Notes: generated from the sequence alone by a model not told the origin. DNA of 64,000 nucleotides from Mobula hypostoma (GCF_963921235.1 NC_086098.1:236902001-236966000); one strand, 5' to 3'. Shown: positions 4,384 through 62,310, counted from the first letter of the stretch. Numbers and translations are program-made.

Positions 4384-7300
4384 ATTTCTTTAAGAAGAGA
4401 TGAATCTGTGGATTTCGTTGCAGCAGGCGGCTTTGGAGGCTGTCATTTAGTATATTTAATACCGAGGTTGCTAGGCTCTTAAATAGTCAGAGCATGAAGG
4501 GATACGAGGCGAAGGCAGGATTCTGGGGCTGAAACGGAAATGGATCTGACAGAATGAAATGGCGGAGCAGGCTTGACGGACAGATATTTCTGTCATAGAG
4601 CATAGAAGTGACACACAACATATGAAATACTATTACCACAAATAAATTAACAAATAATGCAATATTTTCCAGAAGACTGACATTTAGTATCAGTTGCATT
4701 TACGACACAAGTCAAAAAGCAAACAGTTTAACGTTATGAGCACTTCATAAGTGATGAAATCTGGATGGTGGCAGGGAATTCAGTAGTCTCACAGTTTAGG
4801 GAGGAAGCTGCTTCCCGTCCTAAAAGTGCTTGTCCCAATGCTAAAACTGCCCGAAGGTAGGGGATCAAAAGAAGGGGAAACGCGCGTCGAAGAAATGCGA
4901 ACTCCGCTTGTTTTCACTGTCGGACCTTGCCTACTGTCTGTATTCTGGTTGAATGGCTGAATTCTATCGCCACCACAATACTGCTTACCTTTCCAATGTG
5001 AGATCTGAACTTTTTATACTCAGTATCAATATTAGTTCAGTGTACCATAGTATTCAGTTTGCAAATTGCCATTGCAGGTGACATGCAAAGGCAGTGTGGA
5101 TATAGAAAATAAATTTATATCTGGACATCCACGGAAGTGGTCAATATGGTGCGTTCTCATTATATGGTGCATTTAACTGACTGTTTTACACTGTTTCTAC
5201 TGCAGACTGGGCACGGAAAGTCAACTCTTTATTCCTTTTCGCAGAAGCTGCCTGACCTGCTAAGTTCCTCAGGCATTTTGTGATTTTGTGTGTGTTACTC
5301 TGGATTTCCAGTATTTGCAGAACTTTCCGGGTGTCAGACCTGTGCACTAAGCGCCACAGTGGAAGCGGGACCGGATCCAACTGGGAATACCGCTCATCCC
5401 TCTCCAAAGAAACGCATTTATGGAGCATCAGCCAGCTCACAATCACTGCGTACCTTGGTTGGAGCCTCCTTCTCCTTCCAAAGAAACCCGTAAACTATTT
5501 ATCTATTTATAAACTCGGAACTTTACCCCTCTGTTCCTTCCCTTGGGCATCGTAAGTTGTACGGCGTACGGAAATCTGGGGAGCAGCCCTCTTCTATGTA
5601 GCTTTCGTGAGGCATTATGAAGATCCCCGTGAAGCACCACGCTACCTCCTGCAGTTTGTTCTATAGATGCTGCCGGAGTTACTGAGTTCCTCCAGCATTT
5701 TTTGTGTTACTTTATTCGTGGTGCCGTTCCATCTTTCCCGCTCTATCGATCCCATCTTCAAAGCAGCCCTAACAGATTCCCTCAATTCATAGTTTGAGCG
5801 AAATCTGTCTGAATTCCCAGTGAGTGCATGGGGCCGTCACTAACAGCGCGTCTTCTCAGTCACACTCCCCATTAACTCCACTCTATTATTCAGGCAGAAT
5901 CTAACTTGAATATATGCGCACGGGTTCTTTAGTCATCTCATGCTCTTTCCCGGTTCAGTAATTCCCTCCAGTCTGATATATACACAAGCCTTAAACTCCA
6001 CCGCAGCAGGTTCAGGAACAGTTATTACCCTTTAAACATCAGACTGCAGAAGCAGTGTGGATGACTTCGAAAACCACAAATCTGAACTGATTGCAAAACC
6101 TAAGGACTCAATTTCAATAACTCTACAAATCTTGTCATCCGTATTATCTATCTGTCTATCTGTTTCTCCATGCAGCTACCTATGTATTTATTTATTTGCG
6201 GGTTTTCATTGATTCTATAGTATATAGTATTTTTGTTAATCTCCAATTGTCCGCAACAAGGTGAATGTCAAGGTAATATATGGTCACATATCTGTACTTT
6301 GATAATAAAATTAATTTGACTTTTGGCAATAACGTCACACTGACTGGCGGGGAGTTTCCAATGACTGAGACGGGTTTAGATACTCAGTGAACTGGTGGGT
6401 CAGTAAGGGAAACCGGAACTGAGTGGAAAGGTCCACATTGATCATATTGGATGATGGAGTGGGAGGAAAAGGTTGAATGGTCTACTCCGGTTCTGTGTGT
6501 TATTTTAAAATGTTCAGTTGCCCAGCCCTTTAAAACATTCCCGTGCGGTAGATTTGTGTACGGGCTCGGATAACGTGTCCAAGGGGTGACAGATAGGAAA
6601 TGGAGCAGATAATTTCGCCAGGATTGGAACAGCTCGACATTTAGATACTCAGAAGTTACAGAAGGTAATTTGCTGAGTTTCCTGGGAGGTTATATGTTTG
6701 TGTGCGCGTGTGTGTGCCGGCGGGATGGGAGGGGCGGGAGGCGTTTGGCTTGGTTTCGGGGCGTACAAGGAGATGGTTTGGTCTTTGTGGTGGAACTAAG
6801 AGAATAGATAACTTCAAGTGTAGAGAATGTCTAAATCATGGGTAAACAGCCTTGCAGCGAGTCTATCAACAGCGTAACACCCGTGGCCAGAATTTGGACA
6901 AAATATAGTGAGAATATCGAGCTCCCTCCCACAGGGATAGGAGGAAATGAAGAGCAGAGGTGCAGGGCGACGAAGAAAATAAGTTCCCAGTGATGGTGGG
7001 AAGTTAACAAAGACGAAAGAGGCCACGGTAGGACAGAGAAATCGGCTTCGGTCAGGAATGGCGGAATACCATATTTTGGTGGATTTGAGTGTAATTTTGT
7101 GTGACTCGGCTGGCAGATGGCACGTTATTCGCCAGCAAACTCCCAACGTACTGCGAGTAAAGACAGACCATGTGAAACCAACCAGTAGTTGCATCTTTAC
7201 TAAGAGTTGTGATGAACAAGATCTAATTATAACATAGTCAAAGGGAGCTCTCTCCATTCTACACACAACGGAAATCAGACTCAGCACAGTGGATACAATT

Positions 7301-7520
7301 CTACTGAGAATTACGCGTCACAAAAATCGGACAATCATCGCGCTCATTTCTGAAATAACTGAACATCTGTTTGTTCTCAGAAGCGGATATTAAGGCACAA
7401 TTAACCTGCACAACGCGGCTACACAGTCCCAATGAGGGCAAACAGTTCACGTGTGCTGTCATCCCGCGCGGCCTCACTGCGAGCAGGACGACGAAGAGAT
7501 GGTGTGACGCAGAGGCGAGC

Positions 7521-7792
7521 TCAGCTCACGGTGCAGGAATAAATGGAACCTTTTTTCCAGGCAGCGGCGGGTACCCGCAGGTAGCTGCTCAGCCTGTAGG
7601 TCTGGTCGGTATCCGGTGACACGGTGCCTGTGGTCACCCCGTTCTCCGTCTCGACGTTATCCACACTCCAGCGAAGCGCTACCAAGCCCGGTTTAAAGCC
7701 GCTCACCAGGCAGGACAGAGTAGCCGAACCTGAGCCGGTCTCTACCGCGGAGGGAGGGAGCAGGAGAACCGAGGGCCTCCGGGACTCGCTAC
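7521..7792 (-). CDS. IgL sigma-cart constant exon, cluster 1, truncated by a 10-nt deletion
   Basis: Acceptor cacag at 7793. Reads SESRRPSVLLLPPS...ATLSCLVSGFKPG..LRW...YRLSSYL...YSCTVS*. The ancestral tail LSSPLRHTISSSSCSQ* continues in another frame to a stop at 7474-7476. Confidence 0.93.
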
Positions 7793-9068
7793 CTGTGTGT
7801 GAGAAACGAGATGAACGGAATAGAGACAATATTAATTTGTGGACTCCCAGAGCTCGGGTAAAAAAAAAACTCGCCAGAAAATAATTAGAAGCTACCGAGT
7901 ATGGAGGCAAACAATGAAATAGGTGGCGGAGTTTGCGGTCCTTCTTTCGGTGAATGAAGCGGCAGTGCGGATTTTTCCAGATTAATCACAAATCCTAAGT
8001 GGACTTTAACTTCCACTGTCTTCCCGGGCGGGGAATCCGGGTCCCACCAGAGATGAGTAAGGAGCCTCATTTATTCCACCCTCCAATTCCTGCACATGGC
8101 TCTGCCCGGTTATTGGTATCTCTGTGGATTCGTGTTTTAGCCTGACCCCAGTGGTTCTTAAGATCTATAACAGGGCTGTGAATTGATGGATATTACTCTT
8201 TCAGCTCTGTGAAGGAGCGCCACAAACTCTAGATTTATAACCTACTGTCATCTCCAGATTCCAAATCCTTTCCCGATTCCGAAAAACAATTACCCTAACT
8301 CCGGACCAAACTATTATCAACAAATCCGGTGCTACCTTGTCACTGGCTCCTATGCCGAGCGATTGAATTCCGGTGACTCCCCAGATATCGATGACTCCCC
8401 CCCCCACCCGGATATTGAGTAATTCAGGATGTCCAAACCTTCTTGCCCAGTGATAGCAGAGGAAATGACGAAAAAGAAGATCGGTCCCGTGAGCAGAAGA
8501 GAGGCGAGGAAACAAGAGTCCAGGTCAGACCGGGATTACCTCCTGGACACGTGCAAACCCGCCCGTTCCCGCTCTATTCTCTGTCCAGTCCGCTAGCTGC
8601 CCAGCATTCTTCTGCAATGTACCTTAAAATATCTGCAGTGTTCCTTGCTTGTTCGTGCCCTTGTTAACAGTTTGAACCTGAGGCGGCCAACTCTGAACGC
8701 GTTGGCTGCCATTTATAGCAGTTCTGAATATTGGGGAAAGTTTTGTAACCAAATCTTGGGGATTGGGTAAGACTGGTTCCGATTCCGACAATACTGGACC
8801 TGGGTTCAGTGTTAAAGGAGAGAAAATGCTCGATCGATCTGGGCATCCACCACCTTAACAGGAGTTCTCGAATGTCGGTATGTACCTCGTGTAAAAAGGT
8901 CATGAAATTGAGGGACCGAATGGTCTCCTAGCCCTATTCGAGACAGGTAAAGCTCTCCCGCGGCATAGAGATGGTACGATTATTTCCTGCATGGATATTT
9001 CCAAAGATGTGAAAAATAGGAGGGACTATGATGGGAATTGCTTGTAAAGGAATGAGCGAGTCACTTAC

Positions 9069-9428
9069 TCTTTACATCCAGGATAATGCCTGGACCGAAG
9101 ATATATTTATCATCCCACACTGCACAGTAATAGACAGCGGAGTCCCGGGAATCCAAGCTGCCGATGGTCAGGATGTGAATGTTGTTGGACAGGTCTCCGG
9201 ACGGCTGGAAACGGCTTGTGATCCCAGGCCCTCCGTTTGTAGGATCATCATCCTCTGGATCGTGCAGAATTACCCACTCCGGTCTCTCCCCGGGACGCTG
9301 TCGATACCAGAGCATGTAGTAACTTGCAATATTTCCGTTCCGCATCTGACACTCTAAGTGGGCGGTGTACCCCGCGGAGACAGGACCGGACATTGGTGTC
9401 TGATTGAGGACTGGGACCGCTAGGATAC
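9069..9428 (-). CDS. Germline-joined VJ exon, IgL sigma-cart, cluster 1 (open frame)
   Basis: Acceptor AG at 9429-9430 and donor GTAAGT at 9068. The 360-nt exon keeps Cys, WYRQ, DSAVYYC and FGPG, with V continuous into J and no RSS. Confidence 0.95.
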
Positions 9429-9548
9429 CTGTGATGAAACACACTAAAACTACTTGGGTGTCTTGGAGCCAACGGAAGTCCCACCAATTGTTTAACACGC
9501 ACTAGAAAATCAGCGGCAATCGCAATTTTTGAGCAATGAGACACTCAC

Positions 9549-9597
9549 CTGATAAATGGACCAGTAAAGCCCACAGGAGAGGCAGCACTCGGGACAT
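9549..9597 (-). CDS. IgL leader exon, cluster 1
   Basis: ATG at 9597, MSRVLPLLWALLVHLS plus G, donor GTGAGT, 120-nt intron, phase 1 matching the VJ exon. Confidence 0.93.
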
Positions 9598-9629: not shown

Positions 9630-9730
9630 GCTCACTGTTATACAAACACGGGGAGGCTCCGGCAGCAGCTTCTGCAAACCGGTGGCCCCAGGTCTGTTTA
9701 TTAACGGGGATATTAATGAGTGGGAGGCGC
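9630..9730 (-). promoter_or_regulatory. Putative V promoter, cluster 1
   Basis: Block conserved with 53700-53770 (taatgagtgggaggcgcc, ctgtttattaac). TAATAAA at 9697-9703 and degenerate octamer-like sites. Confidence 0.6.
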
Positions 9731-20657: not shown

Positions 20658-22621
20658 CATAGAAACATAGAAACATAGAAAATAGATGCAGGAGTAGGCC
20701 ATTCGGCCCTTTGAGGCTGCACCGCCATTTATTATGATCATGGCTGATCATCCAACTCAGAACCCTGCACCAGCCTTCCCTCCATACCCACTGATCCCCG
20801 TAGCCACAAGGGCCATATCTAACTCCCTCTTAAATATAGCCAATGAACTGGCCTCAACTGTTTCATGTGGCAGAGAATTCCACAGATTCACCACTCTCTG
20901 TGTGAAGAAGTTTTTCCTAATCTCAGTCCTAAAAGGCTTCCCCTTTATCCTCAAACTGTGACCCCTCGTTCTGGACTTCCCCAACATCGGGAACAATCTT
21001 CCTGCATCTAGCCTGTCCAATCCTTTTAGGATTTTATACGTTTCAATCAGATCCCCCCTCAATCTTCTAAGTTCCAACGAGTACAAGCCTAGTTCATCCA
21101 GTCTTTCTTCATATGAAAGTCCTACCATCCCAGGAATCAATCTGGTGAACCTTCTTTGTACTCCCTCTATGGCAAGAATGTCTTTCCTCAGATTAGGGGA
21201 CCAAAACTGCACACAATACTCCAGGTGTGGTCTCACCAAGGCCTTGTACAACTGCAGTAGTACCTCCCTGCTCCTGTACTCGAATCCTCTCGCTATAAAT
21301 GCCAGCATACCATTCGCCTTTTTCACCGCCTGCTGTACCTGCATGCCCACTTTCAATGACTGGTGTATAATGACACCCAGGTCTCGTTGCACCTCCCCTT
21401 TTCCTAATCGGCCACCATTCAGATAATAATCTGTTTTCCTAGGCTAAGCGGTCTATAATTCCCCGGTTTCTCTCTCCCTCCTTTTTTAAAAAGTGGGGTT
21501 GCATTAGCCACCCTCCATTCCTCAGGAACTAGTCCAGAATCTAACGAGTTTTGAAAAATTATCACTAATGCATCCACTATTTCTTGGGCTACTTCCTTAA
21601 GCACTCTGGGATGCAGACCATCTGTCCCTGGGGATTTATCTGCCTTTAATCCCTTCAATTTTCCTAACACCACTTCCCTACTAACATGTATTTCGCTCAG
21701 TTCCTCCATCTCACTGGACCCTCTGTCCCCTACTATTTCTGGAAGATTATTTATGTCCTCCTTAGTGAAGACAGAACCAAAGTAATTATTCAATTGGTCT
21801 GCCATGTCCTTGCTCCCCATAATCATTTCACCTGTTTCTGTCTGTAGGGGACCTACATTTGTCTTTACCAGTCTTTTCCTTTTTACATATCTATAAAAGC
21901 TTTTACAGTCAGTTTTTATGTTCCCTGCCAGTTTTCTCTCATAATCTTTTTTCCCCTTCCTAATTAAGCCCTTTGTCCTCCTCTGTGGAACTCTGAATTT
22001 CTCCCAGTCCTCAGGTGAGCCACTTTTTCTGGCTAATTTGTATGCTTCTGCTTTGGAATTGATACTATCCCTAATTTCTCTTGTCAGCCACGGGTGCACT
22101 ACCTTCCTTGATTTATTCTTTTGCCAAACTGGGATGAACAATTGTTGTAGTTCATCCATGCAATCTTTAAATGCTTGCCATTGCATATCCACCGACAATC
22201 CTTTAAGTGTCATTTGCCAGTCTATCTTAGCTAATTCACGTCTCATACCTTCAAAGCAACCCCTCTTTAAGTTCAGAACTTTTGTTTCTAAATTAAGTAT
22301 GTCATTGTTCATCATAATGAAGAATTCCACCATATTATGGTCACTGTTACCCAAGGGGCCTCTCACGACAAGATTGCTAATTAACCCTTCTTCATTGCTC
22401 AAAACCCAGTCTAGAATAGCCTGCTCTCTAGTTGGTTCCTCGACATGTTGGTTCAAAAAACCATCCCGCATACATTCCAAGAAATCCTCTTCCTCAGCAC
22501 CTTTACCAATTTGGTTCACCCAATCTGCATGTAGATTGCAGTCACCCATTATAACTGCTGTTCCTTTATTGCACACATTTCTAATTTCCTGTTTAATACC
22601 ATCTCCGACCTCACTACTGCT
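20658..22621 (-). mobile_element. Young CR1 LINE, 5'-truncated, with an internal deletion of the RT core
   Basis: Clean ORFs 21419-22576 (endonuclease C-terminus to NYRPLSL) and 20757-21392 (QRDLG to stop). The FADD region is absent. (catagaaa)n tail at 20658. Confidence 0.92.
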
Positions 22622-23459
22622 GTATCATAAGATATAACAGCAGAATTAGGCAATTTAGTCCATCGAGTCTGCTGCACCATTTGTTGATGGCTGCTTTATT
22701 TTCCTTTTTAACCCATTCCCGTACCTACTCCCGTAACTTTCGACACCCTGCCTCATCAAGACGCTATCAAACTCTGTTTTAATAATACCCAGTGACTTGA
22801 TCTCCATAGCCATTTCTGGCAATGGATTCCACAGGTTCGCCAGCTTCTGGTTATAGATATGCCTCCTGATCTCTGTTTTCTGTTTTTGCATTCTGAGACT
22901 GTGCCCTCTGGCACTAGACTTTCTCTCTATTGGAAATATCCTCTCCACATCCGCTCTTTCTAGGCCTTTCGATATTCGGTAGTCTTCAATGAAATTCCTC
23001 ACTGATTTGCCTAAATTCCAGTGTGTACATGCCCATGGCCATCAAAACACCCCTCGTAAGCTAAACCTTTCATAAAATACAGAACACGTCAGTACAGTAT
23101 ATTCGCCATTTATATAATCCATGTTCCTATCTAGGAGTTTCTTAACTGCCCCTAATGTATCTGTCTCTATCACCCCCATACTTTCCTCCAATTATCTTAA
23201 TAAATTTTTTCCTTGGGAAAAAAACTCTCTGGCTATCCATCATATCTATGCCTCTTATCATCTTGTACACATCAATCAAGCTACCTGTCATTCTTCTTCG
23301 TTCCAAAGGCAAGATATCTTTTGCAACACAGATAAAAATTTCTGGTGAACGCAGCAGGCCAGGCAGCATCTATAGGAAGAGGTACAGTAGACGATTCTGG
23401 CCAATACCCTTCGTCAGGAAATATTTAATTCACTCTACCTCTCTTTATCAGACACGTGT

Positions 23460-23803
23460 CCTCGCAATTCTTCTCCATTTCTTCTCTAAAGTTCCCACAT
23501 CCTTTCTATAAGAAAGCGACCAGAACGGAACACAATATTGTAAATGTGCTCTAACCAGGGTCTTATAGAGCTGTAAATTTACCTTGCGGTTCTTGAAATT
23601 AACTTCCTAATTAATGAAGATCAATACGCCACACTTCTTAGCAACGCAAACAATCTGTGCGGCAAATTTGAGGTAATTATGGATGTGGAACCCAAGACTC
23701 CTCTCTTCCTTCTTAGAGTCAATAATTATGCCATTAACCTTGTATTCCACCTTCAAATTGAATATCAAAAATGAATCACAATACAGTTTTCTGGGTTGAA
23801 CTC
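23460..23803 (-). mobile_element. Decayed CR1 fragment that hosts the Gypsy element (continues 30505-32060)
   Basis: CR1 RT remnants lie on both sides of the LTR element in the same orientation. Confidence 0.7.
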
Positions 23804-23908
23804 TGTGAGGGGATCCAGGAGTACCCCTATTAACTGTTTGGAGAGAGACATTTATAATTGATGGTTTGTTTGGAAAGGAGAGAGAGAGACAGTTATTTAC
23901 CACCGATA

Positions 23909-25181
23909 CCACTGACTCTCACAGCTATCTGGACTATTCCTCTTCTCAGCCTGTCTCTTGCAAAAACGCCATCCCCTTCTCGCAATTCCTCCGTCTCCGC
24001 CGCATCTGCTCTCAGGATGAGGCTTTTCATTCTAGGACGAGGGAGATGTCTTCATTTTTTAAAGAAAGGGGCTTCCCTTCCTCCACTATCAACTCTGCTC
24101 TTAAACGCATCTCCCCCATTTCACGTACATCTGCTCTCACTCCATCCTCCCACCACCCCACTAGGAATAGGGTTCCCCTGGTCCTCACCTACCACCCCAC
24201 CAGCCTTTGGGTCCAACATATTATTGTCCGTAACTTCCGCCACCTCCAACGGGATCCCACCAGTAAGCATATCTTTCCCTCCCCCCCTCTCTCTGCATTC
24301 CGCAGGGATCGCTCCCTACACAACTACCTTGCCCATTCGACCCCCCCATCCCTCCCCACTGATCTCCCTCCTGGCACTTACCCGTGTAAGCGGAACAAGT
24401 GCTACACATGCCCTTACACTTCCTCCCTTACCACCATTCAGGGCCCCAAACAGTCCTTCCAGGTGAGGCATCACTTCACCTGTGAGTCGACTGGGGTGAT
24501 ATACTGCGTCCGGTGCTCCCGATGTGGCCTTTTATATATTGGTGAGACCAGACGCAGACTGGGAGACCGCTTTGCTGAACATCTACGCTCTGTCCGCCAG
24601 AGAAAGCAGGATCTCCCAGTGGCCACACATTTTAATTCCACATCCCATTCCCATTCTGACATGTCTATCCACGGCCTCCTCTACTGTAAAGATGAAGCCA
24701 CACTCAGGTTGGAGGAACAACACCTTATATTCCGTATGGGTAGCCTCCAACCTGATGGCATGAACATTGACTTCTCTAACTTCCGCTAGGCCCCACCTCC
24801 CCCTCGTACCCCATCTGTTACTCTTTTTTATGCACACATTCTTTCTCTCACTCTCCTTTTTCTCCCTCTGTCCCTCTGAATATACCTCTTGCCCATCCTC
24901 TGGGTCACCCCCCCCCCGTCTTTCTTCCCTGACCTCCTGTCCCATGATCCTCTCGTATCCCCTTCTGCCTATCACCTGTCCAGCTCTCGGCTCTATCCCT
25001 CCCCCTCCTGTCTTCTCCTATCATTTTGCATCTCCCCCTCCCCCTCCAGCTTTCAAATCCCTTACTCACTCTTCCTTCAGTTAGTGCTGACGAAGGGTCT
25101 CGGCCTGAAACGTCGACTGCGCCTCTTCCTATAGATGCTGCCTGGCCTGCTGCGTTCACCAGCAACTTTGATGTGTGTTGC
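23909..25181 (+). mobile_element. 5'-truncated Penelope-like element (RT thumb plus GIY-YIG) inserted in the 5' LTR
   Basis: TDSHSYLDY.S...IPFSQFLRLRRICS, GVIYCVRC...LYIGETRRRLGDRFAEH. 13-bp TSD tttaccaccgata at 23896-23908 and 25182-25194. Confidence 0.95.
25082..25119 (+). ncRNA. Minimal type I hammerhead ribozyme motif at the Penelope 3' end
   Basis: CUGACGA, 3-bp stem II, GAAA, palindromic ACGU, predicted GUC cleavage after 25114. Stem I has one mismatch. Confidence 0.65.
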
Positions 25182-26208
25182 TTTACCACCGATATGTTGC
25201 TTTTGGAAAAGAGAGAGAGAGACGAAGATTGACAGTTGGACTGTCACTTTAAGGCATTGGAAGTAACTTTGGATTGTTACTAAGTCTGGAGTTGGAGACA
25301 GCACCGAGCAGCTCGAAGGTTGCTACGGTGACCAAAGGCCGATTGTTGATGTTACTTCCAAGGACTTGTTGCCTGCTTGTGCACTTCTTTACAGACAAAG
25401 GAAGGAGGGACTCTTTGAAAGGCAGGTGATGCTCGGCCTGGTGAAATAAATAGGAGGTCAGATGATACAGACCTCAGACACATGATCTGGACACTGAATG
25501 AGCATTGTTGTGCCCGCAGAAAAAGTGGGTTTTGGAGGATCGATCAGGCGGATCGATCCAAATTGCTATTCCACCATGTGACGAAGGGGTTGACTGGTGG
25601 GGACTTGTCTATGTGTCCACGCTTGCCGGGGTGATAGCTCCACCACAGGAAAACCGGTCCCCCTGGTTAAAGTCACAGTCGGTGACTTGTAAAGGATTTC
25701 GGAGGACGACGAGAAGATCGACGGCATCAGCTCACCTGAAGACTCAACTCACACTCTCTCTCTCTCTCCATCGCTACTCAACTAAATACGACAAACTGAA
25801 CTAAACTGAACTTTACTCAACATCGTAAGACTGTATCTTTTTACCCCTAGACTTAAAGAGGCTTGGTTTTTCATACATATATATTCCACACGTACTTTTA
25901 TATATAATCATTGCTAACCTGTTTGATTTATCTACGTTTATATTACTGTATTGTGTAGTTACTAATAAATATTCGTAGTTTATAGCAATACGAGACTCCA
26001 AAGTGTTTTCCATCTCTGCTGGTTCTTTAATCCCGTCATGGGGTACGTGACAAAATCCTTTTAAACCGTCTCTGCTTTTCTGCCACGTGACATAAATTGG
26101 GGCCTGCGTCCGCGATATGAACAAATTGGTCGGGAGGCTGGTTTGAGTTGATTGGGGAAAACCCGTTTTGAAAATTCCTTTGATTGGTTGTGTGGAATAT
26201 CAGCAGAA

Positions 26209-27227
26209 ATGGATGTTGCGGAATTTTTGGAATCGCCAGACCACGTGTCCTTGAAAAAGGCGAGGAAATAGGAGTTGCGGGACATTGCTAAGGAAGTGAA
26301 TGTTGAGGTAAAGAGAGGTATGACGAAAGCAGAAATTCAAAGAAAAATAGCTGAATATTATGTCTCTATACAGACTTTTGAGGAGAGCGAGTTAAAGAGG
26401 TTTCCTGTAGAGAAAGAGGAGGTCGAGGTCCACCTAGAACTGTTAAAGATAGAGAGATTGAAATTAGAGAGAGAGGTGGCACAGAATCAGAGAGCGTTTG
26501 AAAGGGAGAGATGGCAACAGAACGCTCAGATGGTGAACCGTGAGGAGGGGTTTAGTGTCAATCGAGAAATTAAGTTAGTACCTCCATTTGATGAAGTAGA
26601 AATTGATAGGCATTTCCTACATTTCGAGAAAGTGGCCCGTAATCGGGAGTGGCCGCGGGAGCAGTGGGCGGTGTTATTAAGGGGAAGGCTCAGCAAGCAT
26701 ATGCAGCCCTGTCTCTCGAAGACGCAAAGGATTATGATAAAAGTGAAGGATGCTGTGTATAAGGCTTATGAGTTAGTACCGGAGGCGTACAGACAAAGGT
26801 TTCGAGGCTTGAGAAAGTCTTGGAACCAAACATATGTGGAGTTTGCGTATGAGAAACGGGTATTCTTTGATCGGTGGTATGCTTCGAAAGGGGCGGTTGA
26901 GAGTGTTGGCAACATGAGAGAGTTACTGTTGATTGAAGAGTTTAAAAACTGCGTCTCGGCTGAGATACGGACGCACTTAGATGAAAAAGGGGCGGCGACA
27001 CTGTCAGAAGCTGCTAAGTTAGCAGACGAATATGCCCTAACTCATAAAGTAAATATTTCCCCACGAAGAGTAACCCACAAGGGAGTAGAGATAATCTACC
27101 GGCTAAACCAGAGAGTAAACCGGGGATTAGTGATAAAAGTAAGGAGGAAGGGAAACAGTCGGGTGTAAAATTTCCCCGTTTTAAGTGTTACTCTTGTGGA
27201 AAACCTGGCCATGTGGCGTCGAATTGT
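26209..27227 (+). pseudogene. gag: Gypsy gag with SCAN-like capsid region and CCHC knuckle
   Basis: ATG at 26209, in-frame TAG at 26269, LLLIEEFKNC...EAAKLADEY, CYSCGKPGHVASNC at 27186-27227 after a frameshift. Confidence 0.85.
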
Positions 27228-27589
27228 CTTGCTGCGAAAAGGGGGTATGTTGAGAAAGCAGACAAAGAAGTTTTAACCCATGAGGTTGAGTTAACTCCAG
27301 ATGAGCGTTGGCCAGAGAATAGCTGGGAGGTTCGAGATGACCTTGAATTTGAAACTGGGACAAGTGATGACAGCCCAGAAGAGGCAGTTGTCCCGACTGA
27401 ATGTGTTCAGGTTGTTGAAGTACCTGTGAGTTCACAGGATTCTGAACCTTATGTTGAGGCCTATAGCAAGACCAGAGGTTTAAATTATGAGGTGTCAGGG
27501 ACTTTTCCATCTTCTAGATTTCAGCAGGACTTAGAGGGTAGTACAGCTGATAAGGGTAAGGTGTACAAGAAAGGTTTGTCTTTATTGAG

Positions 27590-29410
27590 CAAGGATTTTA
27601 CAGAGGAACAGAAGCGAGATTCTGGAATGGTGGCTTTAAGGGAGATGGCTATCACAGGAGAGGAGGTTCAGAGTGAGTCAGTGGGATGTTACCTTAAAGA
27701 TGGGGTGTTGATGAGGAGGTGGAGACCAGCCAGAGTGCCTGCAGGTCACGTGGTGGTTCTGGAAGGTTACAGGGCTGGAATTTTAAACATGGCTTACAGT
27801 ATGCCTTTAGGTGGATTTCATTGTGTGAGAAATGAGGAAAATTGGGATGGGGGGTTCCCCTCCTTTTATTTAGTGGTGGAGATTCGATTCAGAAGGCAGT
27901 GAAGGGTAATTTGTTGGAACCTGTGTTCAGTTACAGGCCAAAAGGACCTTTGACCCTCTTCAGAGAACTCTGGAAGGGATGTAGTAAGCTTTGTGACTTT
28001 GCCAAGGAAAGTTTACAAAATGGTCGAGTCAAAATAAGACAGTTGTTTACTGGAACTGCGGCTGGGAGAATTGTTGGAGTACAAAATGGAGTCGTGAAAT
28101 CTGATAATGGAATGGAAAAACATGTTTACCCATTGAATCTTGACTCACCAAAATGTCAGAATTCCACTGTTTTGAAAAATATTACTGATAAGGTCCACCA
28201 GTTGGTCCCAACGCCGAAAAAACAAGTAAAAGGACTAATTGGTGTTTTGAAATGGGGCACAGGTGCAATGAATCACGTCATTATGAATTTAGTCCAGCCT
28301 ATGAAATGGTATCTTCACAGAGTGAACTTTGAGAAAAATAAAATGTTTGAACAAGGAATTAGAAACAAGAAAGAACGAAGAAAGAGAATGGATGACTGTA
28401 TTGATAGAGTGGGGAAGGCTAAATACCTCGTTAAGATTGACTTGTTAAAAGGATACCGGGGAGTTCCTTTAACAGAGAGGGTTAAAGAGATATCAACATT
28501 TGTGACACTGTCTAGACTGTATGAATACAATGTTTTACACTTTGGGATGAAGAATGCTTTGGAAACATTTCAAACAATGATCAGTTCTGTGATTGGAGGG
28601 TTAGAAAGCACAGGAGTTCATATCAATGATTTAGTGGTCTGGAATGACACGTGGGAAGAGCATATTGCAGCTGTAGAAAAACAGTTTGACAGACTTTCTA
28701 AGGCCAATCTTATGGTGAACCTCGCTAAAAGTGAATCTGGCCGTGCCACAGTCACATATCTGGGTTACGTGGTGGGCCAAGGCCAGCTGGCTCCTGTACA
28801 GGCCAAGGTTCAAGAGATTGCTGAAGTTCCTGTTCCAACTGGCAAAAAAAGCTTTAAGAAGGTTTTTAGGAATGGTTGGGTATTATAGAAAATTCTGTAA
28901 GAACTTTGTTGACATCGCTCTCCCCCTAACAAAACTCCTAGGGAAAGAGCGAAAGATTTGAATGGAGTGACCTTTGCCAGGAGGCATTTGAACGTCTGGA
29001 CACTATCCTGTGTTATCATCCTGTGCTCAAAGCACCTGACTTTTCAAAGCCATTTTCAATAACAACAGGTGTTAGTGACGAAGCTGCTGGGGCAGTACGG
29101 TTACAGAAGGGAGCGAATGACATTGAACATCCAGTAGCTTATTTCTCAAAGAAATTTAATGTACACCAGAAAAATTATTCAACTGTTGAGAAGGAGTTAT
29201 TGGCACTTATTCTGGCCTTACAACATTTTGAAATTTATACTTGTCCTGCCCAAAGACCTCTTGTGATTTACACAGATCACAATCTGCTGAAGTTTTTTTT
29301 TTAAATAAAATGAAGGATAAGAACAGAAGGTTGTTAAATTGGAGTCTAGTATTGCAGGAAGGTGACTTAAAAATCAAACATGTGAAAGGTACTGACAATG
29401 TTATAGCTGA
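27590..29410 (+). pseudogene. pol: Gypsy pol remnants (IN N-terminus, RT, RNase H)
   Basis: ILNMAYSMPLGG (H2C2-like), then KIDLLKGY...FGMKNA and HIND in place of YIDD, then HPVAYFSKK...YSTVEKELLA. Frameshifted, no protease motif seen. Confidence 0.88.
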
Positions 29411-30224: not shown

Positions 30225-32837
30225 ACTACTCAACTAAATACCACAAACTGAACTGAACTGAAATTTACTCAACATCGTAAGATTTTATCTTTTTACCCCT
30301 AGGCTTAAAGAGGCTTGGTTTTTCATACATATATATTCCACACTTACTTTTATATATAGTCATTGCTTACCTGTTTGATTTATCTACATTTATATTACTG
30401 TATCATGTAGTTACTAATAAATATTCGTAGTGTATAGCAATACGAAACTCCAAAGTGTTTTCCATCTCTGCTGGTTCTTTATCCCCTTCACGGGGTACGT
30501 GACAACTCTCAGACCAGTTCTACAACCTGTCAAAGCAACCTGCAACAATCTTCCACACTATACACAACTCCACCAATCTTCGTCTTATCTCCAAGGTTAC
30601 CAATCTACTCTTGCAGTTTGTCACCCATGTCATTTTAAAAACTGATAAAGAATAGGGGTCCCAGAAAAGATCCTACGGAACATTACTGATCACAGACCTC
30701 GAGGCAGAATACTCTGTATCTACTACCATTTTCTGCTTTCTATAGGCAAGCCAATTCTTCATCCACACAGCCAAATTTCCTTGGATTAGACGCGTTCTCA
30801 ATTTCAGAAAGGGCCTACCATAGGGAACGTTATCAAACGCCTTACTAAGCATGGTATACACCATATACACTCTCTACCTTCATTACTGCGCTTTATTACA
30901 CCTAAGCTGATGCTCGTGAGGCATCACCTGCCCCTCACAAAGTCACGCCGACTATCTGTGATCATACAGTGCATCTCCAAATGATCGTAAACCCTGTCCC
31001 TAAGAATTCTCTCCAAGAAATCGCACACCACTGTATAATACCCAGGGTTATCCATGCTCCCTTTCTTTAACAACACCTTCCAGTCATCTAGAACTACTCC
31101 TGTGGCCAGTGAGGTCGCAAAAATCGTCGTCAAGGGTGTGGCTATCTCTTGGCGTCGCAACCCGCGTTATATCCCGTCTGGCCCCAGGGTCTTATTTAGG
31201 CTAATGTTTTCCAAAAGCTCTTGCACATCCTCTTTTTTAATATGAACATGTTCTCGCATATCTGCTCGTTTTAAGCTGCATTCAGAAGCGACAAAGTCCC
31301 TCTTACTTAGGGGTTCCCAAGGTTTTTATGACATGGAGCCTTATCATTATGTTGTGGTCCGTGGACTCCAGATTGGGAACCACTGCTTACTGAAGCAAAG
31401 TATCTAGTAAGGACGTCGCTTGCTTCTCCGACTACAGGCACATCTTTCCTTTACTATTTCTGATCGATCCAACCGTCACTCCAGTTATCCTCCTCCTCTT
31501 CACATACGGGTAGAAGCCTTGGGGTTTTCCCTAACTTTATTCGCTAAGGCCTTCTCCTGCTCCTCCTAGCTGTCCTAAGTCCATTCTTCAGCTCCTTCCT
31601 GGCTACCTTGTAGCTTTCTCGGGCTCTGCCTGATTACTGCTTCCTAAAAATAAGTTTTTTACTTCCTCTTGAGTAGATGTTCCACATTTCTTGTCAGCCA
31701 TGGTTCTTTAATCCTTCCATCATTTCCCGCTTCAATGAGACAAACCTATCCAGATCCCTCACCAAGTACTCCCGAAACAACCTCCACATTTCCGCTGTGC
31801 ATTCCCCTGAGTACATCGGTTGCCAACTTATGCTTCCCAATTTCTGCCTAATAGCAAAATATTTTCCCCTCCCACAATTAAATACTTTACTATACTATCT
31901 GCTCCAAGGTTATTGTGAAAGTCATTTCTCCAAATGCTCAGCCACCGAGAGATCTGACACCTGACCTCGTTCATTGCCTGGAGTCGGTCTGTCTACCTAT
32001 TGTTAGGAGTCCCTCCTGACACACCTAACAAATTGTGCCCCATCCAAACCTTTTGCACTAAGGAGACATCGATCAATATTAGGGAAATGAAGTTCCCCAT
32101 GACAAAAGCGCTGTTACTTTTTCATCTTTTCGCTCTCCCATCCCCTGCAGCCATTTGAACTGCTCATCCTCCTCTATTAGAGTGCTGTGGACTAGAGCCG
32201 AGACACCCCTAAACAGCATACCATCCGTATAATTCTTGAGATCATTATCGTAAATCTTCTCCAAACGTTTCTTGGATACGGGACCCAAAACTGCTCGTAA
32301 TGCTCTATGCGCGTTCTGACCAAGGCCGCAGAAGAGGGATGAAGCCGCTGTAGGACACAGAAATCAGTATTGATCAAGAGGGTCAGAATAAGCTGCCTGA
32401 GCTGGTTTGAATGTAATTCTGTGTGCAGCTCCTGAGCTCCACCTTATCCGCTACCAATCACCCCAAGGTACTGCGAGTAGCCAAGTGAGGACAAGCCACG
32501 ATAAACCCACTACTGTCATATCTATATTACGAGTTTTTTTTACACAAGATCTAATCGCAACATGGTCACCATCTACGGAATATCTCTCTCCATTCTACAC
32601 ACAGTGCCAGTTCAGATATAGCACAGTAAGGATAATTCTGTAGAGAACTGCGCGTCGCAAAAAAAAAAGCGGACAATCATCGCGCACATTTCTGAAATTA
32701 TTAAAAATTCTGTTTGTTCCTGGAAGCGGACAGTACGACATAATTACATTGCTTGAGGTGGCTGCACAGCCCCATTGCGGGTTTCAGTGCTTTTGACAGG
32801 AGCAAACAATCCGTGTCTACTGCCAACCGACGCGGCC

Positions 32838-33085
32838 TCATTGCGCGCAGATGGACGAAAGGATGGTTCGAGCCCTTGTTCCAGGCAGTGGCGGGTATCC
32901 ACATGTAACTGCTCAGCTTGTAGGTCTGGTCAATGTCTTGGTCTCGAAGCTATGCACGCACCAGCGGGATTTTACAAAGCCCAGCTTAAAGCCGTTCACC
33001 GGGAAGGACCAAGTGGCCGATTCCGAGCTGGTTTCGACCAGCGAGAGAAGGAGTAGCAGAAGCGAGGATTTCCACGCCTCGCTAC
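32838..33085 (-). pseudogene. IgL sigma-cart constant pseudo-exon, cluster 2
   Basis: Acceptor cgcag at 33086. Aligns to C1/C3 with deletions of 31 and 50 nt (248 vs 329 nt). First Cys is now Phe and the second Cys is deleted. DQTYKLSSY and ICAQ* are retained. Confidence 0.92.
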
Positions 33086-39846: not shown

Positions 39847-42800
39847 ATAGAACCATAGAACCATAGAAACTACAGCACAGAACAGGCCTTTTGGCCCTTC
39901 TTGGCTGTGCCGAACCATTTTCTGCCTAGTCCCACTGACCTGCACACGGACCATATCCCTCCATACACCTCCCATCCATGTATCTGTCCAATTTATTCTT
40001 ACTTGTTAAAAAAGAACCCGCATTTACCACCTCGTCTGGCAGCTCATTCCATACTCCCACCACTCTCTGTGTGAAGAAGCCCCCACTAATGTTCCCTTTA
40101 AACTTTTCCCCCCTCACCCTTAACCCATGTCCTCCGGTTTTTTTCTCCCCTTGCCTCAGTGGAAAAAGCCTGCTTGCATTCACTCTATCTATACCCATCA
40201 TAATTTTATATACCTCTATCAAATCTCCCCCCATTCTTCTACACTCCAGGGAATAAAATCCTAACCTATTCAACCTTTCTCTGTAACTGAGTTTCTCAAG
40301 TCCCGGCAACATCTTTGTAAACCTTCTCTGCACTCTTTCAACTTTATTTATATCCTTCCTGTAATTTGGTGACCAAAACTGAACACAATACTCCAGATAC
40401 GGTCTCACCAATGCCTTATACAACCTCATCATAACATTCCAGCTTTTATACTCAATACTTTGATTAATAAAGGCCAATGTACCAAAAGCTCTCTTTACGA
40501 CCCTATCTACCTGTGACGCCACTTTTAGGGAATTTTGTAGCTGTATTCCCAGATCCCTCTGTTCTACTGCACTCCTCAGTGCCTTACCATTAACCCTATA
40601 TGTTCTACCTTGGTTTGTCCTTCCAACGTGCAATACCTCACACTTGTCTGTATTAAACTCCATCTGCCATTTTTCAGCCCATTTTTCCAGCTGGTCCAAG
40701 TCCCTCTGCAGGCTCTGAAAAACTTCCTCACTGTCTACTACACCTCCAATCTTTGTATCATCAGCAAATTTGCTGATCCAATTTACCCCACTATCATCCA
40801 GATCATTGATATAGATGACAAATAACAATGGACCCAGCACTGATCCCTGTGGCACACCACTAGTCACAGGCCTCCAGTCAGAGAAGCAATTCTCTACTAC
40901 CACTCTTTGGCTTCTTCCATTGAGCCAATGTCCGATCCAATCTACCACCTCTCCATGTATACCTAGCGACTGACTTTTCCTAACTAACCTCCCATGCGGG
41001 ACCTTGTCAAAGGCCTTACTGAAGTCCATGTAGACAATATCCACTGCCTTCCCTTCATCCACTTTCCTGGTAACCTCCTCGAAAAACTCCAATAGATTGG
41101 TCAAACATGACCTGCCACGCACAAAGCCATGTTGACTCTCCCTAATAAGTCCCTGTCTATGCAAATGCTTGTAGATTCTGTCTCTTAGTACTCCCTCCAA
41201 TAACTTACCTACTACCGACGTTAAACTTACCAGCCTATGATTTCCTGGATTACTTTTCGATCCTTTTTTAAACAAGGGAACAACATGAGCCACTCTCCAA
41301 TCTCTGGCACCTCACTTGTAGACAGCGACGTTTTAAATATTTCTGCCAGGGCCCCTGCAATTTCAACACCAGTCTCCTTCAAGGTTCGAGGGAATACCCT
41401 GTCAGGTCCCGGGGATTTATCCACTTTAGTTTTCCTCAAGACAGCAAGGACCTCCTCCTTTTCGATCTGTACGGTTTCCATGATCTCACTACTTGTTTCC
41501 CCTAATTCCATAGACTTCATGCCAGTTTCCTTAGTAAATACAGACGCAAAAAACCTATTTAAGATCTCCCCCATTTCCTTTGGTTCCGCACATAGGTGAC
41601 CAATCTGATCTTCAAGAGGACCAATTTTATCCCTTACAATCCTTTTGCTCTTAATATACCTGTAAAAGCTCTTTGGATTATCCTTCACTTTGACTGCCAA
41701 TGCAACCTCATGTCTTCTTTTACCCCTCCTGATTTCTTTCTTAAGTATTTTCTTGCACTTCTTATACTCCTCAAGCAACTTATTTACTCCCTGCTTCCTA
41801 TACATTTCATACAACTCCCTCTTCTTCTTTATCAGAGTTGCAATATCCCTTGAGAACCAAGGTTCCTTATTCCTACTCACGTTGACTTTAATCCTGACAG
41901 GAACATACAAATTCTGCACTCTCAAAATTTCTCCTTTGAAGGCTTCCCACCTACCGATCACATCCTCGCCAGAGAACAACCTGTCCCAATCCACGCTTTT
42001 TAGATCCTTTCTCATTTCTTCAAATTTGGCCTTCTTCCAGTTAAGAACCTCAACCCTAGGACCAGATCTATCCTTGTCCATGATCAAATTGAAACTAATG
42101 GTGTTATGATCACTGGAACCAAAGTGCTCCCCTACACAGACTTCCGTCACTTGTCCTAACTCTTTTCCTAACAGGAGATCCAATATTGCATCCCCTCTCG
42201 TTGGTCCCTCTATATATTGATTTAGAAAACTTTCCTGAACACATTTTACAAACTCTAAACCATCTAGACCCCTAACAGTATGGGAGTCCCAATCAATATA
42301 TGGAAAATTAAATTCCCCTACCACCACAACTTTTTGTTTCCTGCAGTCGCCTGCTATGTCTCTGCAGATTTGCTCTTCCAATTCTCGTTGACTGTTGGGT
42401 GGTCTGTAATACAATCCCACTAATGTGGCCATACCTTTCCTGTTTCTCAGCTCCACCCATAAGGACTCAGTAGACAAGCCCTCTAATCTGTCCTGCCTAG
42501 GCACTGCTGTAATATTTTCCCTAACAAGCAATGCTACTCCCCCACCTTTCATTCCTCTGCCTCGATCACATCTGAAACATCGGAACGCTGGAATATTAAG
42601 CTGCCAGTCCTGCCCCTCCTGTAGCCAAGTTTCACTAATTGCTATAACGTCATAATTCCACGTGTCAATCCACGTCCTCAACTCATCCGCCTTCCACGCA
42701 ATACTCCTAGCATTGAAATATATACACCTCAGAAGATTTTCACCACCACTCACTACCTTTCTATGAGCGGATTTGCTTGAAATTTTAACATCACTTTATT

Positions 42801-51583: not shown

Positions 51584-51912
51584 TCACTGTGCACAGGCGG
51601 ACAAAGAGATGGTGTTGCGCAGCGGCGAGCTCAGCGAGCTGTGGCTCACGCTGCAGGAATAGCTCGAGCCCTTTTCCCAGGCAGCAGCAGATACCCGCAG
51701 GTAACTGCTCAGCCTGTAGGTCTGGTCAGTGTCCAGGGACATGGCGCTTGTTGTCACCCCACTCTCCGTCTCGATTCCATCCACGGTCCAGCGCAGCGCA
51801 ACGAAACCTGGCTTAAATCCGCTCACCAGACAGGATAACGTGGCCGATCCTGAACCAGTCTCTTGTAGGGAAGGAGGGAGCAAAAGAACCGAGGGCCTCC
51901 GCGCCTGGTTAC
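51584..51912 (-). pseudogene. IgL sigma-cart constant exon, cluster 3 (open frame, acceptor mutated AG to AC)
   Basis: 108 codons ending SCSVSHSSLSSPLRNTISLSACAQ*. Acceptor reads cacacac|GT where cluster 1 reads cacacag|GT. Confidence 0.92.
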
Positions 51913-52637
51913 GTGTGTGTAAGAGAGGGCGGAGGGTGAAGAAAAACATTTCTAATTTATGAGCGCCTCCAGTCATTCACCCGAAACATGCTTTACGAAC
52001 TCCCATTGTTACCGTCTGATTAATCCATTGTTGCACCGACGGAAGTATATTTAAGATAAGATAAGTGGTAAGACTCTTCTTTATTCCTCCCACCATTTAC
52101 CCCTCTGCACTTAGTCGTATCATAAGGATATTGTAGTAGCTGTTAGGCCAAGAATTCCATATTATTTCCGTGATAGTTGCTGAGGAGTTTAGGACGTTCT
52201 AAAGTTGGAAAAAAACTGTGTATATTGAAAGACCCCCCCCCCACCACCACCCACTGTGGAACACGAAATAGATGTAAATCAGGGCAGGTCTGTGAGCCTG
52301 TTTGAGGCTGAATGACCAGAAACCGTTAGGCTGAGACGTAAACCACATCACTGATCTGCTCCCGGCCCGGGACTCTGAACAGTTCATCCTCCGCGCGCCA
52401 TTTTCGCGTTTCTTTGTCAGAAACTGACGTTTGTGTTAAATTTCCTGAACATGTGGACGGTGTTTAACAAGGAAAGGATTGTTGTCCTATGCCATTTTAT
52501 GGGGCGCGCTGTCTCCAGGATTGGACTCGGCCAGAATGGATTGATTCATTATGATGGGCCCGCAAGATCTGTGGTGGGCCTCGAGTGAGAACGATCAAGA
52601 AATGATCGTCGAATCCGGAGTAACGAACAATCTCAAA

Positions 52638-52800
52638 CACAATATGCTGGAGGAACTCAGCAAGTCAAGCAGCGTCTATGGAAAAGACCCTGATGAAGGG
52701 TCTCGGCCCAAAACATCAGCAGTTTACTCTTTTCCATAGACGATGCCTGACCTTCAGCATTTTTTCTATATTGCTTTGGACTTCCAGCATCTGCAGATTT
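52638..52800 (+). repeat. Penelope-end-derived fold-back in the cluster 3 J-C intron
   Basis: Perfect 15-bp inverted repeat at 52673-52687 / 52728-52742 flanking CTGATGAAGGGTCTCGGCCCAAAAC. Confidence 0.75.
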
Positions 52801-53083
52801 TCTCGTGGGGTACGAGCTGCATGAGAGAGGGGAAAGGAACTGTCGCGATTTCAGGTCAAAATTCCGCAAGGGCTGATCGAATTCTGGCGAAAATAGTTCA
52901 TGAGCTTTTTCGAGCTTTCCACTAGCCTCCTCGCCGATTCGGTGCGGCGATGGGACATGAAGGTCATAGATCGAGACCTCCCACAATCTGTAGTGAGCAA
53001 TTCCCGAATGGGGATTTCTCCAGCGGCAGGAAACGAGAACGACTGTAATGTGAATTTTTGAAACAGAAGAGGGAGTTACTTAC

Positions 53084-53443
53084 TCTTTATATCCAGCATC
53101 GTTCCCGGGCCATAGAAATAACCCACGTTATTCTCCCCAAACCGGCAGTAATAGACGGCGGAATCGCCGGGCTCCAGACTGCTGATGGTCAGGATATAAC
53201 TGTTGGCAGAGGTGTCTCTGGACGTTTGGAAAGGGTCAGTGACACCGGTTCCCCTATAAATATTATTACCAGCTGTATGTGAAATCACCCACTGCGGTCT
53301 CTCCCCCGGACGCTGGCGATCCCACAACACGCCGTAACTTGAAACCTTTCCCTTCTCCATCCGACACTCTAAGCGGGCGGTCTATCCCGCGGAGACAGGA
53401 CCCGAAAATAGAGTCTGATTGAGGACTGGAACCGCCAGGATAC
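53084..53443 (-). pseudogene. Germline-joined VJ exon, cluster 3, with a premature stop
   Basis: 360-nt exon with intact splice sites. TAG at 53382-53384, WDRQ in place of WYRQ and YGPG in place of FGPG. Confidence 0.95.
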
Positions 53444-53573
53444 CTGCAACGCAACACAATAAACCAGTGTTATTTGAAGCTAACGGGAAGTTCATCATCG
53501 TTAAAGACCCGCAGAAACCAGCATTATCGGGATTTTATCGGAATATCCGTGGGTGAACCAACCCTCCTCTCAC

Positions 53574-53622
53574 CTGTTAAATCGACCAGCAGAGCGCACA
53601 GAAGCTGCAGGGCTGGGGACAT
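53574..53622 (-). pseudogene. IgL leader exon, cluster 3
   Basis: MSPALQLLCALLVDLT plus G, donor GTGAGA, 130-nt intron. Confidence 0.92.
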
Positions 53623-53699: not shown

Positions 53700-53770
53700 A
53701 TTCCAGCGAATGCAAACAGAGCCGCGGGTTCTGTTTATTAACCAGGATGCTAATGAGTGGGAGGCGCCGG
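53700..53770 (-). promoter_or_regulatory. Putative V promoter, cluster 3, with two 7/8 octamers
   Basis: ATTAGCAT (53747-53754), TAATAAA (53734-53740) and GTTTGCAT (53710-53717) on the minus strand. Confidence 0.65.
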
Positions 53771-53879
53771 GGACTGGATATGTGCGGTGACTGACCACCC
53801 GTCCTCTAGAAACAACTGACGGCGAATTAAATGATCGCTGAATCCTTAACTTTCATTTGAAGAAGATTCATTTCAGTTG

Positions 53880-61876: not shown

Positions 61877-62111
61877 NNNNNNNNNNNNNNNNNNNNNNNN
61901 NNNNNNNNNNNNNNNNNNNNNNNNNNNNNNNNNNNNNNNNNNNNNNNNNNNNNNNNNNNNNNNNNNNNNNNNNNNNNNNNNNNNNNNNNNNNNNNNNNNN
62001 NNNNNNNNNNNNNNNNNNNNNNNNNNNNNNNNNNNNNNNNNNNNNNNNNNNNNNNNNNNNNNNNNNNNNNNNNNNNNNNNNNNNNNNNNNNNNNNNNNNN
62101 NNNNNNNNNNN
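61877..62111. other. Assembly gap (235 N)
   Basis: Read directly. Confidence 1.
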
Positions 62112-62310
62112 NCAGAGAGCTAGAGACAGAGGCAGACAGAAAGATAGAGGGAGACAGACAGAGACAGACAGACAGAGTGAGACAGAGATACAGAGAGACA
62201 GACACAGAGACACAGTGAGACAGAGAAACAGAGAGAGAAAGAGAGAGAGAGAGGGAGAGAGAGAGACAGAGAGAGACAGAGAGGGATAGAGAGAGAGAGA
62301 TGAAATAGAC
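62112..62310. repeat. (GA)n/(GACA)n microsatellite next to the gap
   Basis: Read directly. Confidence 0.95.

Follow-up and report, generated by a model that had tools for sequence, protein, structure and literature searches.

Does a light-chain cluster whose constant exon stops just behind its second cysteine still make a useful protein, or is the gene lost? The locus in question, cluster 1, is a compact three-exon immunoglobulin (Ig) light-chain cluster of ~2.1 kb at 9597-7474, on the minus strand of the window (the whole 64,000-nt stretch of Mobula hypostoma DNA that was analysed, NC_086098.1:236902001-236966000). The original prediction offered two readings of it: a recent pseudogene, or an invariant, RAG-independent, non-covalently pairing light chain loosely analogous to surrogate light chains.

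Structure of cluster 1 and its truncated C exon

The exons, introns and motifs of cluster 1, in the order in which they are read, are as follows.

9549..9597, minus strand: leader exon, 49 nt, ATG at 9597, donor CAG/GTGAGT
9429..9548, minus strand: leader intron, 120 nt, GT..AG
9069..9428, minus strand: VJ exon, germline-joined, 360 nt, acceptor ...cacag/GT, donor AAAGA/GTAAGT
within 9354-9343 and 9132-9124, minus strand: codons of the V-set domain Cys pair of the VJ exon, both present
9099-9088, minus strand: J motif FGPG, followed by Ile where Thr is usual
7793..9068, minus strand: J-C intron, 1276 nt, with the same joint in a paralog RNA contig
7521..7792, minus strand: C exon in its current reading, encoding C1-set strands A-F and both intradomain Cys, preceded by ...cacacag
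between 7524 and 7523, minus strand: site of the 10-nt deletion, a gap in the MAFFT alignment where the contig of a second organism (organism B) has 10 nt
7523-7521, minus strand: new stop TGA, directly after YSCTVS
7474..7520, minus strand: stranded remnant of the old frame, now 3' UTR, encoding SPLRHTISSSSCSQ, i.e. the G strand and terminal Cys
7476-7474, minus strand: old stop of the C exon, at the end of the stranded remnant

The leader, VJ exon and splice sites had been described as intact and in phase, and both the exon map and the open reading frame (ORF) agree. The exon phases match (49 + 360 = 409, phase 1), and the spliced ORF encodes 226 aa with the C-terminus ...GSIYSCTVS. The VJ exon reads without interruption as YYC-AVWDDKYI-FGPG-IILDVK and contains neither a recombination signal sequence (RSS) nor a spacer. 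The leader peptide is almost identical to those of three family members discussed below, P0039, P0019 and P0023. Pfam profiles recognize a V-set domain (E=4e-13) and a C1-set domain (E=1e-20), the latter over profile positions 1-81 of 86.

The missing end of the C1-set domain is explained by a single event. MAFFT alignment of the cluster 1 C exon (C1) with that of cluster 3 (C3, 51912-51584) places one 10-nt gap in C1 right behind GTGAGC, giving 319 vs 329 nt, and reading the ORF through this point gives the TGA at 7521; both values reproduce the earlier ones. The frameshift removes the last 19 codons of C, and because the stop follows immediately behind the break no new tail is encoded. When mapped on a human lambda chain (PDB 2rcj_C), the lost part comprises the end of strand F, the FG loop, strand G and the terminal Cys, so that the 226-aa precursor keeps its intradomain Cys and loses the G strand and terminal Cys, as predicted. 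The remnant at 7474..7520 can still be aligned with the tails of P0019 and P0039. The C-terminal Cys of a light chain is the partner in the heavy-light disulfide. Cluster 1 thus lacks a complete C domain with strand G and terminal Cys, and is, as judged from its sequence, a broken rather than a working member of the type I / sigma-2 light-chain family.

The deletion had been placed between two TGAGC repeats. Both copies are indeed found beside it and both are kept, and the flanking microhomology amounts to only 2 nt (GC). Classic slippage between the TGAGC copies was rejected on the basis of the MAFFT alignment, since both copies remain and only the 2-nt GC microhomology is present.

Family placement and flanking regions

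The V exon of cluster 1 used as a query returned one match, a stingray 'lambda-1 light chain-like' model (P0001), and a protein search with that model returned 59 relatives; the family was gathered with these two queries rather than with the whole spliced 226-aa protein. Cluster 1 is 69% identical to the type I chain P0035 of Leucoraja erinacea and 62% identical to the type I chain P0045 of Heterodontus. In a maximum-likelihood tree it is nested in the batoid part of the type I family, within a 100/99-supported batoid subclade that also holds P0019, P0023, P0032 and P0039. Homology and tree position, the pairing of V-set and C1-set domains in a compact cluster and the germline VJ all agree with an assignment of cluster 1 to the type I / sigma-2 isotype (sigma-cart, NS5) of cartilaginous fish.

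At least 89 type I clusters have been characterized in skate, and every one is germline-joined (Anderson et al. 1995, PMC2192082). They have the same L / VJ / C layout and germline VJ as cluster 1 (PMC2192082; review PMC5192425), which, unlike them, is unable to make strand G or the terminal Cys. The Pristis gene L001, 2.0 kb long, likewise has its V and J together in one block and its C in another, and the 243-245-aa gene models of Mobula, Hemitrygon, Hypanus and Pristis are consistent with the same germline-joined organization. Since a germline VJ is universal in the batoid type I family, the pre-joined, RAG-independent and invariant state is no mark of cluster 1. The C-terminal tail, ...SC.VSHSSLSSPL...C.., is found in all 50-odd homologous light chains and is missing from C1.

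Pseudogenes are known among shark light-chain loci, for example nurse-shark NS4 R6/R19 and the fourth sigma-2 locus (PMC2193156, PMC5192425), and in Hemitrygon a frameshifted family member is annotated as a protein (P0055). As in cluster 1, these carry a small lesion in a gene that is otherwise normal. Unlike in those shark and ray pseudogenes, the cluster 1 lesion lies at the extreme C-terminal end and leaves most of the protein translatable. The likeness is one of birth-and-death turnover.

The flanks of cluster 1 contain the following conserved elements.

9672..9727, minus strand: conserved, promoter-like upstream block, aligned with the upstream region of cluster 3 and compared by eye with Pristis pectinata L001
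9727-9708, minus strand: part of the upstream block in cluster 1, CCTCCCACTCATTAATATCC
9705-9694, minus strand: part of the upstream block in cluster 1, GTTAATAAACAG
9680-9672, minus strand: part of the upstream block, GGTTTGCAG, identical in the intact Pristis pectinata gene L001
9646-9635, minus strand: TATAA-like motif of cluster 1, downstream of the promoter-like block
7250..7473, minus strand: conserved 3' UTR and flank, aligned with clusters 2 and 3 and with the Pristis and Amblyraja genes
within 7376-7367, minus strand: AACAAA of cluster 1, the norm for the family
between 7439 and 7438, minus strand: lineage-specific 21-nt deletion in the 3' UTR, which appears to be common to the organism B contig

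The block at 9672..9727 probably acts as the promoter. Two apparent signs of decay in the flanks were considered and rejected. The octamer of cluster 1 differs from that of cluster 3 (GTTTGCAG vs GTTTGCAT); the intact Pristis gene likewise carries GGTTTGCAG, which is therefore the family state. Similarly, AACAAA in place of the AATAAA of cluster 3 does not amount to a lost poly(A) signal, as AACAAA is found in cluster 2 and Pristis too, and AACAAC in Amblyraja. The promoter-like block, splice sites and 3' flank of cluster 1 are like those of intact family members, so the lesion is recent.

The deletion, its age and the Mobula birostris ortholog

The disabling lesion is present in sequencing reads. 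Four DNA runs of organism A, which belongs to the same species as the window, contain 77-86% of the stretch's words. A Logan read contig of this organism, with a depth of 8.3, matches 7493-7722 without a single difference or gap, and the single-copy contigs that flank the break have depths of 7.9-9.1. An insertion at the break was found in none of the organism A contigs aligned to the window. A check of reads across 7515-7530 had been proposed earlier; here the contig keeps the deletion and no 10 nt are restored. As the read contig carries the deletion with 0 differences, the gap is not an assembly slip, and as depth across the break equals that of the single-copy flanks, the deletion looks homozygous in the sampled animal. 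The organism A evidence comes from one sample (S1, runs X1-X4), possibly the assembly's own animal and hence not fully independent.

Organism B, in which ~40% of the stretch's words are present, keeps the 10 nt. Over 7300-9300 its syntenic contig of 3007 nt differs from the window at 57 of 2001 nt (2.85%), and the alignment has 16 gap letters. Behind 7523 this contig has ten extra letters, included in those 16, with the sequence CACAGCCCGC in the gene's orientation. The intact ten letters also follow 7524 in contigs of a third organism and of an RNA run whose alignments end there. The closest protein to cluster 1, at 94.7% identity over all 226 residues, is P0039 of Mobula birostris ('immunoglobulin lambda-1 light chain-like'), a 245-aa chain with the full tail ...SCTVSHSPLSSPLRNTISSSSCSR. 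The HSPL of P0039 is the exact translation of organism B's ten letters and is unique among the 59 homologs. Organism B contigs further agree with P0039 at Arg40 (9359 T>C) and Arg82 (9234 C>G); with three of three diagnostic sites matching, organism B probably lies in or very near the P0039 lineage. Since the 10 nt are present in both the organism B contig and P0039, they were lost after the split, in the lineage of the window. The truncation of C1 is lineage-specific and not conserved.

P0039 and the organism B ortholog have the acidic, extended CDR2 and the FGPGI of J in common with cluster 1, and the M. birostris gene model spans 2139 nt vs ~2134 nt for cluster 1 with its missing 10 nt counted. 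The ortholog differs from cluster 1 in that it keeps the 10 nt and the tail and bears other lesions. The organism B contig has a 1-nt deletion at 7682 in the C exon, which turns ...CCG GGC TTG GTA... into ...TTG TAG with a stop after KPGL, a change seen in one contig at depth 6.5. P0039 is without this frameshift, and its V domain has lost the first Cys (Cys23 to Tyr), the Trp of FR2 (W68S) and a conserved Asp of FR3 (D112G). The cluster 1 lesion is thus not conserved and the ortholog is free to decay; in the sister taxon it is decaying by different lesions.

Cluster 1 and P0039 differ at 12 amino acids, where 14.5 would be expected under neutrality (509 non-synonymous sites, 2.85% divergence), in an estimate that sets protein differences against the 2-kb DNA divergence and is not a true dN/dS. 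Values of omega <=0.3 are rejected (P<=0.002) and omega 0.5 is not quite rejected (P=0.065); the divergence is compatible with neutrality. Just 1-2 of the 12 differences fall in CDRs and the remainder in framework and C positions, whereas a diversifying V gene would have its changes concentrated in the CDRs.

The lineage leading to both genes had already accelerated. P0019, also from M. hypostoma, is the nearest intact relative, and in relative-rate tests with four outgroups cluster 1 has 18-21 unique changes vs 4-7 for P0019 (p = 0.001-0.04). In the tree the stem to cluster 1 and P0039 measures 0.23 vs 0.066 for P0019, and the cluster 1 lineage is 3-4 times faster than this relative. Changes on the stem at near-invariant positions include Arg to Gly in FR3 and FGPGT to FGPGI in J. 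With P0019 as outgroup, the later differences can be assigned to branches: ten to that of P0039 and three to that of the window's gene. These data fit a dispensable gene, with constraint on the cluster 1 lineage relaxed before the deletion and the species split. A phase of functional change on the stem is possible and compatible with the protein data, and the window's own branch, with its 3 unique changes only, may possibly have been under constraint up to the present. Departures from family-invariant residues were counted as a further measure of decay and set aside; the 5 of cluster 1 and 8 of P0039 are inside the range of annotated members (0-10).

Alternative readings and neighbouring clusters

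Transcription of cluster 1 was sought among the RNA runs on record, none of which contains the stretch; runs X11-X13 hold ~0 of the cluster 1 words. In X11, the largest RNA-like run of organism A, a spliced contig joins 7789 to 9066 (cut +3). The join corresponds to the predicted removal of the J-C intron, and at ~88% identity to cluster 1 the contig must come from a paralog. Further paralog contigs of X11 lie on the C exon, and in one of them 7524 is followed by the intact ten letters. Of the 7 aligned contigs, none is >=95% identical to cluster 1, in what is a small run of unspecified tissue represented by contigs only. A search of RNA for spliced L-VJ-C1 reads had been proposed earlier; X11 shows paralogs only, and the absence of a cluster 1 transcript among the RNA contigs is a weak negative.

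The deletion after codon 226 shifts the C1 frame onto an immediate TGA, which costs the chain everything from the end of strand F onward, including the FG loop, strand G and the heavy-chain-bonding Cys. A stop codon in the last exon normally escapes nonsense-mediated decay (NMD). A cluster 1 mRNA, if transcribed, should thus persist, and its product would have an incomplete C domain, for which misfolding, retention and degradation are to be expected. Such a chain would form no covalent heavy-light bond and would make no contribution to the antibody repertoire.

We consider it very probable that cluster 1 is a copy of a germline-joined sigma-2 light-chain cluster that lost its function recently and in this lineage of a devil-ray-like batoid only, a pseudogene or, if the deletion is not yet fixed, a null allele. 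The recent-pseudogene half of the original prediction is supported in that the deletion is real in reads, is absent from organism B and M. birostris, and is accompanied by an otherwise damaged ortholog and relaxed constraint. Loss of the 10 nt as an assembly or sequencing artefact is scarcely credible. The best DNA source is possibly the same sample as the assembly; against this, the contig at 7493-7722 was built from raw reads, is gapless with 0 differences at normal single-copy depth, the insertion is seen in no organism A contig, four runs contain 77-86% of the stretch's words, and a 10-nt loss in non-repetitive sequence is atypical of read error. That the deletion is instead a segregating and possibly rare null allele, the gene being functional in most individuals, is unlikely but deserves more weight. 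It is documented by the single sample S1 (runs X1-X4), the window's own branch has acquired just 3 unique changes since the split, and the flanks and splice sites are intact. The sampled animal nevertheless looks homozygous, with contig depth at the break equal to that of the flanks, and a lineage that was fast before the split and whose ortholog is decaying points to a gene that would be dispensable anyway.

It is very doubtful that the 226-aa product is made and used as an invariant, non-covalently pairing, surrogate-like light chain, with its incomplete C domain either tolerated as it is or completed by a partner. Several points favour this reading: no damage is seen in the ORF, the signal peptide, the V domain, the C-domain Cys pair or the splice sites; the last-exon stop should spare the mRNA from NMD; the promoter-like block and 3' flank are as in intact family members; and the V of this lineage evolves fast, with an acidic CDR2 that is unusual. 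Specialized joined chains also exist: in the neonatal nurse shark, IgM1gj pairs preferentially with a germline-joined sigma-2 chain (PMC5192425). Set against these points, the truncation is missing from organism B, P0039 and all 50-odd homologs, the ortholog bears different disabling changes, the stop directly at the break leaves no new tail, ortholog substitutions are spread across framework and C at a near-neutral rate, and the RNA run that expresses paralogs yielded no contig of a cluster 1 transcript. Germline joining is family-wide and no sign of special function (PMC2192082). The mammalian surrogate light chain (VpreB / lambda5) is loosely alike as a non-rearranging Ig-like chain with an incomplete Ig domain. 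VpreB and lambda5, in contrast to cluster 1, are conserved across species and have unique non-Ig tails, and each completes the fold of the other by donating a strand; in cluster 1 the truncation is unconserved, and there is neither a unique tail nor a known partner. No VpreB or lambda5 has been found in fish (PMC5192425). If this reading were true, cluster 1 would be a newly arisen functional analogue of the surrogate light chain in a ray.

If cluster 1 is taken as a pseudogene or null allele, it has no place in a count of the species' functional light chains, and it opens no route to a surrogate light chain in cartilaginous fish. As an ordinary case of its kind it would have little importance beyond annotation. 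It does offer a clean, datable example of birth-and-death among the germline-joined clusters of rays, with orthologs hit differently in sister lineages. The M. birostris ortholog, with its V-domain Cys gone, also illustrates that an intact-looking gene model need not be a working gene.

Two further light-chain clusters and one N run were recorded in the window.

51584..53622, minus strand: cluster 3, pseudogene, carrying TAG in FR1 of V, WDRQ in place of WYRQ, and AC in place of AG at the acceptor of its C exon
32863..33085, minus strand: cluster 2, a decayed orphan C exon that has two internal deletions and lacks the first Cys
61877-62112, window coordinates: N run

The original prediction had used C3 as its yardstick for C1, a choice that does not hold up: cluster 3 is itself broken, and C1 and C3 are 78% identical paralogs, not near-duplicates. 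The C ORF of cluster 3 is intact. With clusters 2 and 3 both dead, and a frameshifted relative annotated in Hemitrygon (P0055), the context speaks for the pseudogene reading of cluster 1. A V exon belonging to cluster 2 was sought in the window and none was found. Retroelement ORFs occupy the space between clusters 1, 2 and 3.

Sequences flanking the light-chain clusters

An upstream block of the form CCTCCCACTCATTAA.ATCC ... GTT.ATAAACA ... GGTTTGCAG is kept in both the window's ray and the sawfish Pristis pectinata (locus L001). The canonical octamer ATTTGCAT is absent from this block in the ray and sawfish sequences compared. From sequence, the conserved motifs are candidates for promoter elements in sigma-2 clusters. 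At the other end of the gene, approximately 250 nt 3′ of the stop codon are conserved among the light-chain clusters of the window's ray, the sawfish and the thorny skate (locus L002). The conserved segments are:

Upstream block: window 9672–9727; window 53730–53779; L001 about 2850–2910
3′ flank: window 7250–7473; L001 5000–5280; L002 11277–11560 and 6336–6620

For a 3′ UTR or flanking region, this downstream segment is unusually well conserved. In cluster 1, 21 nt of the segment are missing between 7439 and 7438, and the contig of organism B, a relative diverged by ~2.9%, shows no gap against the window at this position, so that the deletion appears to be common to organism B. A canonical AATAAA lies downstream of only one of the three window clusters, cluster 3.

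Decayed clusters and intervening elements

The two other clusters, and the ORFs in the space between clusters, are located as follows:

51584–53622, minus: cluster 3, pseudogene with intact C reading frame
32332–33085, minus: cluster 2, orphan decayed C exon
39926–42753, minus: LINE endonuclease and reverse transcriptase
27842–28888: reverse transcriptase
26275–27168: SCAN-domain ORF
23866–24789: weak GIY-YIG match
21419–22576: endonuclease fragment

Cluster 3 is a pseudogene, although its C reading frame is intact: FR1 of its V segment contains an in-frame TAG (SAG*TARLEC), WYRQ is changed to WDRQ in V and FGPG to YGPG in J, and the splice acceptor of the C exon is AC in place of AG. The C exon of cluster 2 carries two internal deletions, each of roughly 30–50 nt, and is missing its first Cys; neither a V segment nor a leader was found upstream of it. 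Its 3′ flank remains conserved despite this decay. Retroelement ORFs occupy 20757–28888 and 39926–42753 in the inter-cluster space, and by our own reading of the weak GIY-YIG match, the ORF at 23866–24789 could be a Penelope-like element.

CDR2 and gene models in related rays

The V and C features described here are located as follows:

9205–9275, minus: acidic CDR2 of cluster 1, HDPEDDDPTN
L002 6020–6343 and 10961–11284: two C exons at the P0042 locus

The acidic CDR2 of cluster 1 exceeds the usual length by two residues. Related acidic CDR2s occur throughout the Mobula and Hemitrygon subclade comprising P0039, P0019, P0023 and P0032; the feature is not private to cluster 1.

P0055 (Hemitrygon akajei, 280 aa), publicly labeled ‘uncharacterized protein’, belongs to the light-chain family. 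Its C exon is read in the wrong frame from just past SVLLLPP onward, so that this protein annotation covers a light-chain cluster with a frameshift. In the thorny skate, gene model P0042 extends over 8.3 kb, bypassing a first C exon and using a second that is 96% identical to it. Either the C exon is tandemly duplicated here, or the gene model bridges two clusters.

Intron differences in organism A

At several intron sites within 7861–8616, organism A's own read contigs disagree with the assembly of the same species. Examples are 8153, where every organism A contig has G>A, and 8396, which is followed by an extra C. These differences mean either that the reads represent a different haplotype or a different animal, or that small assembly errors are present there.
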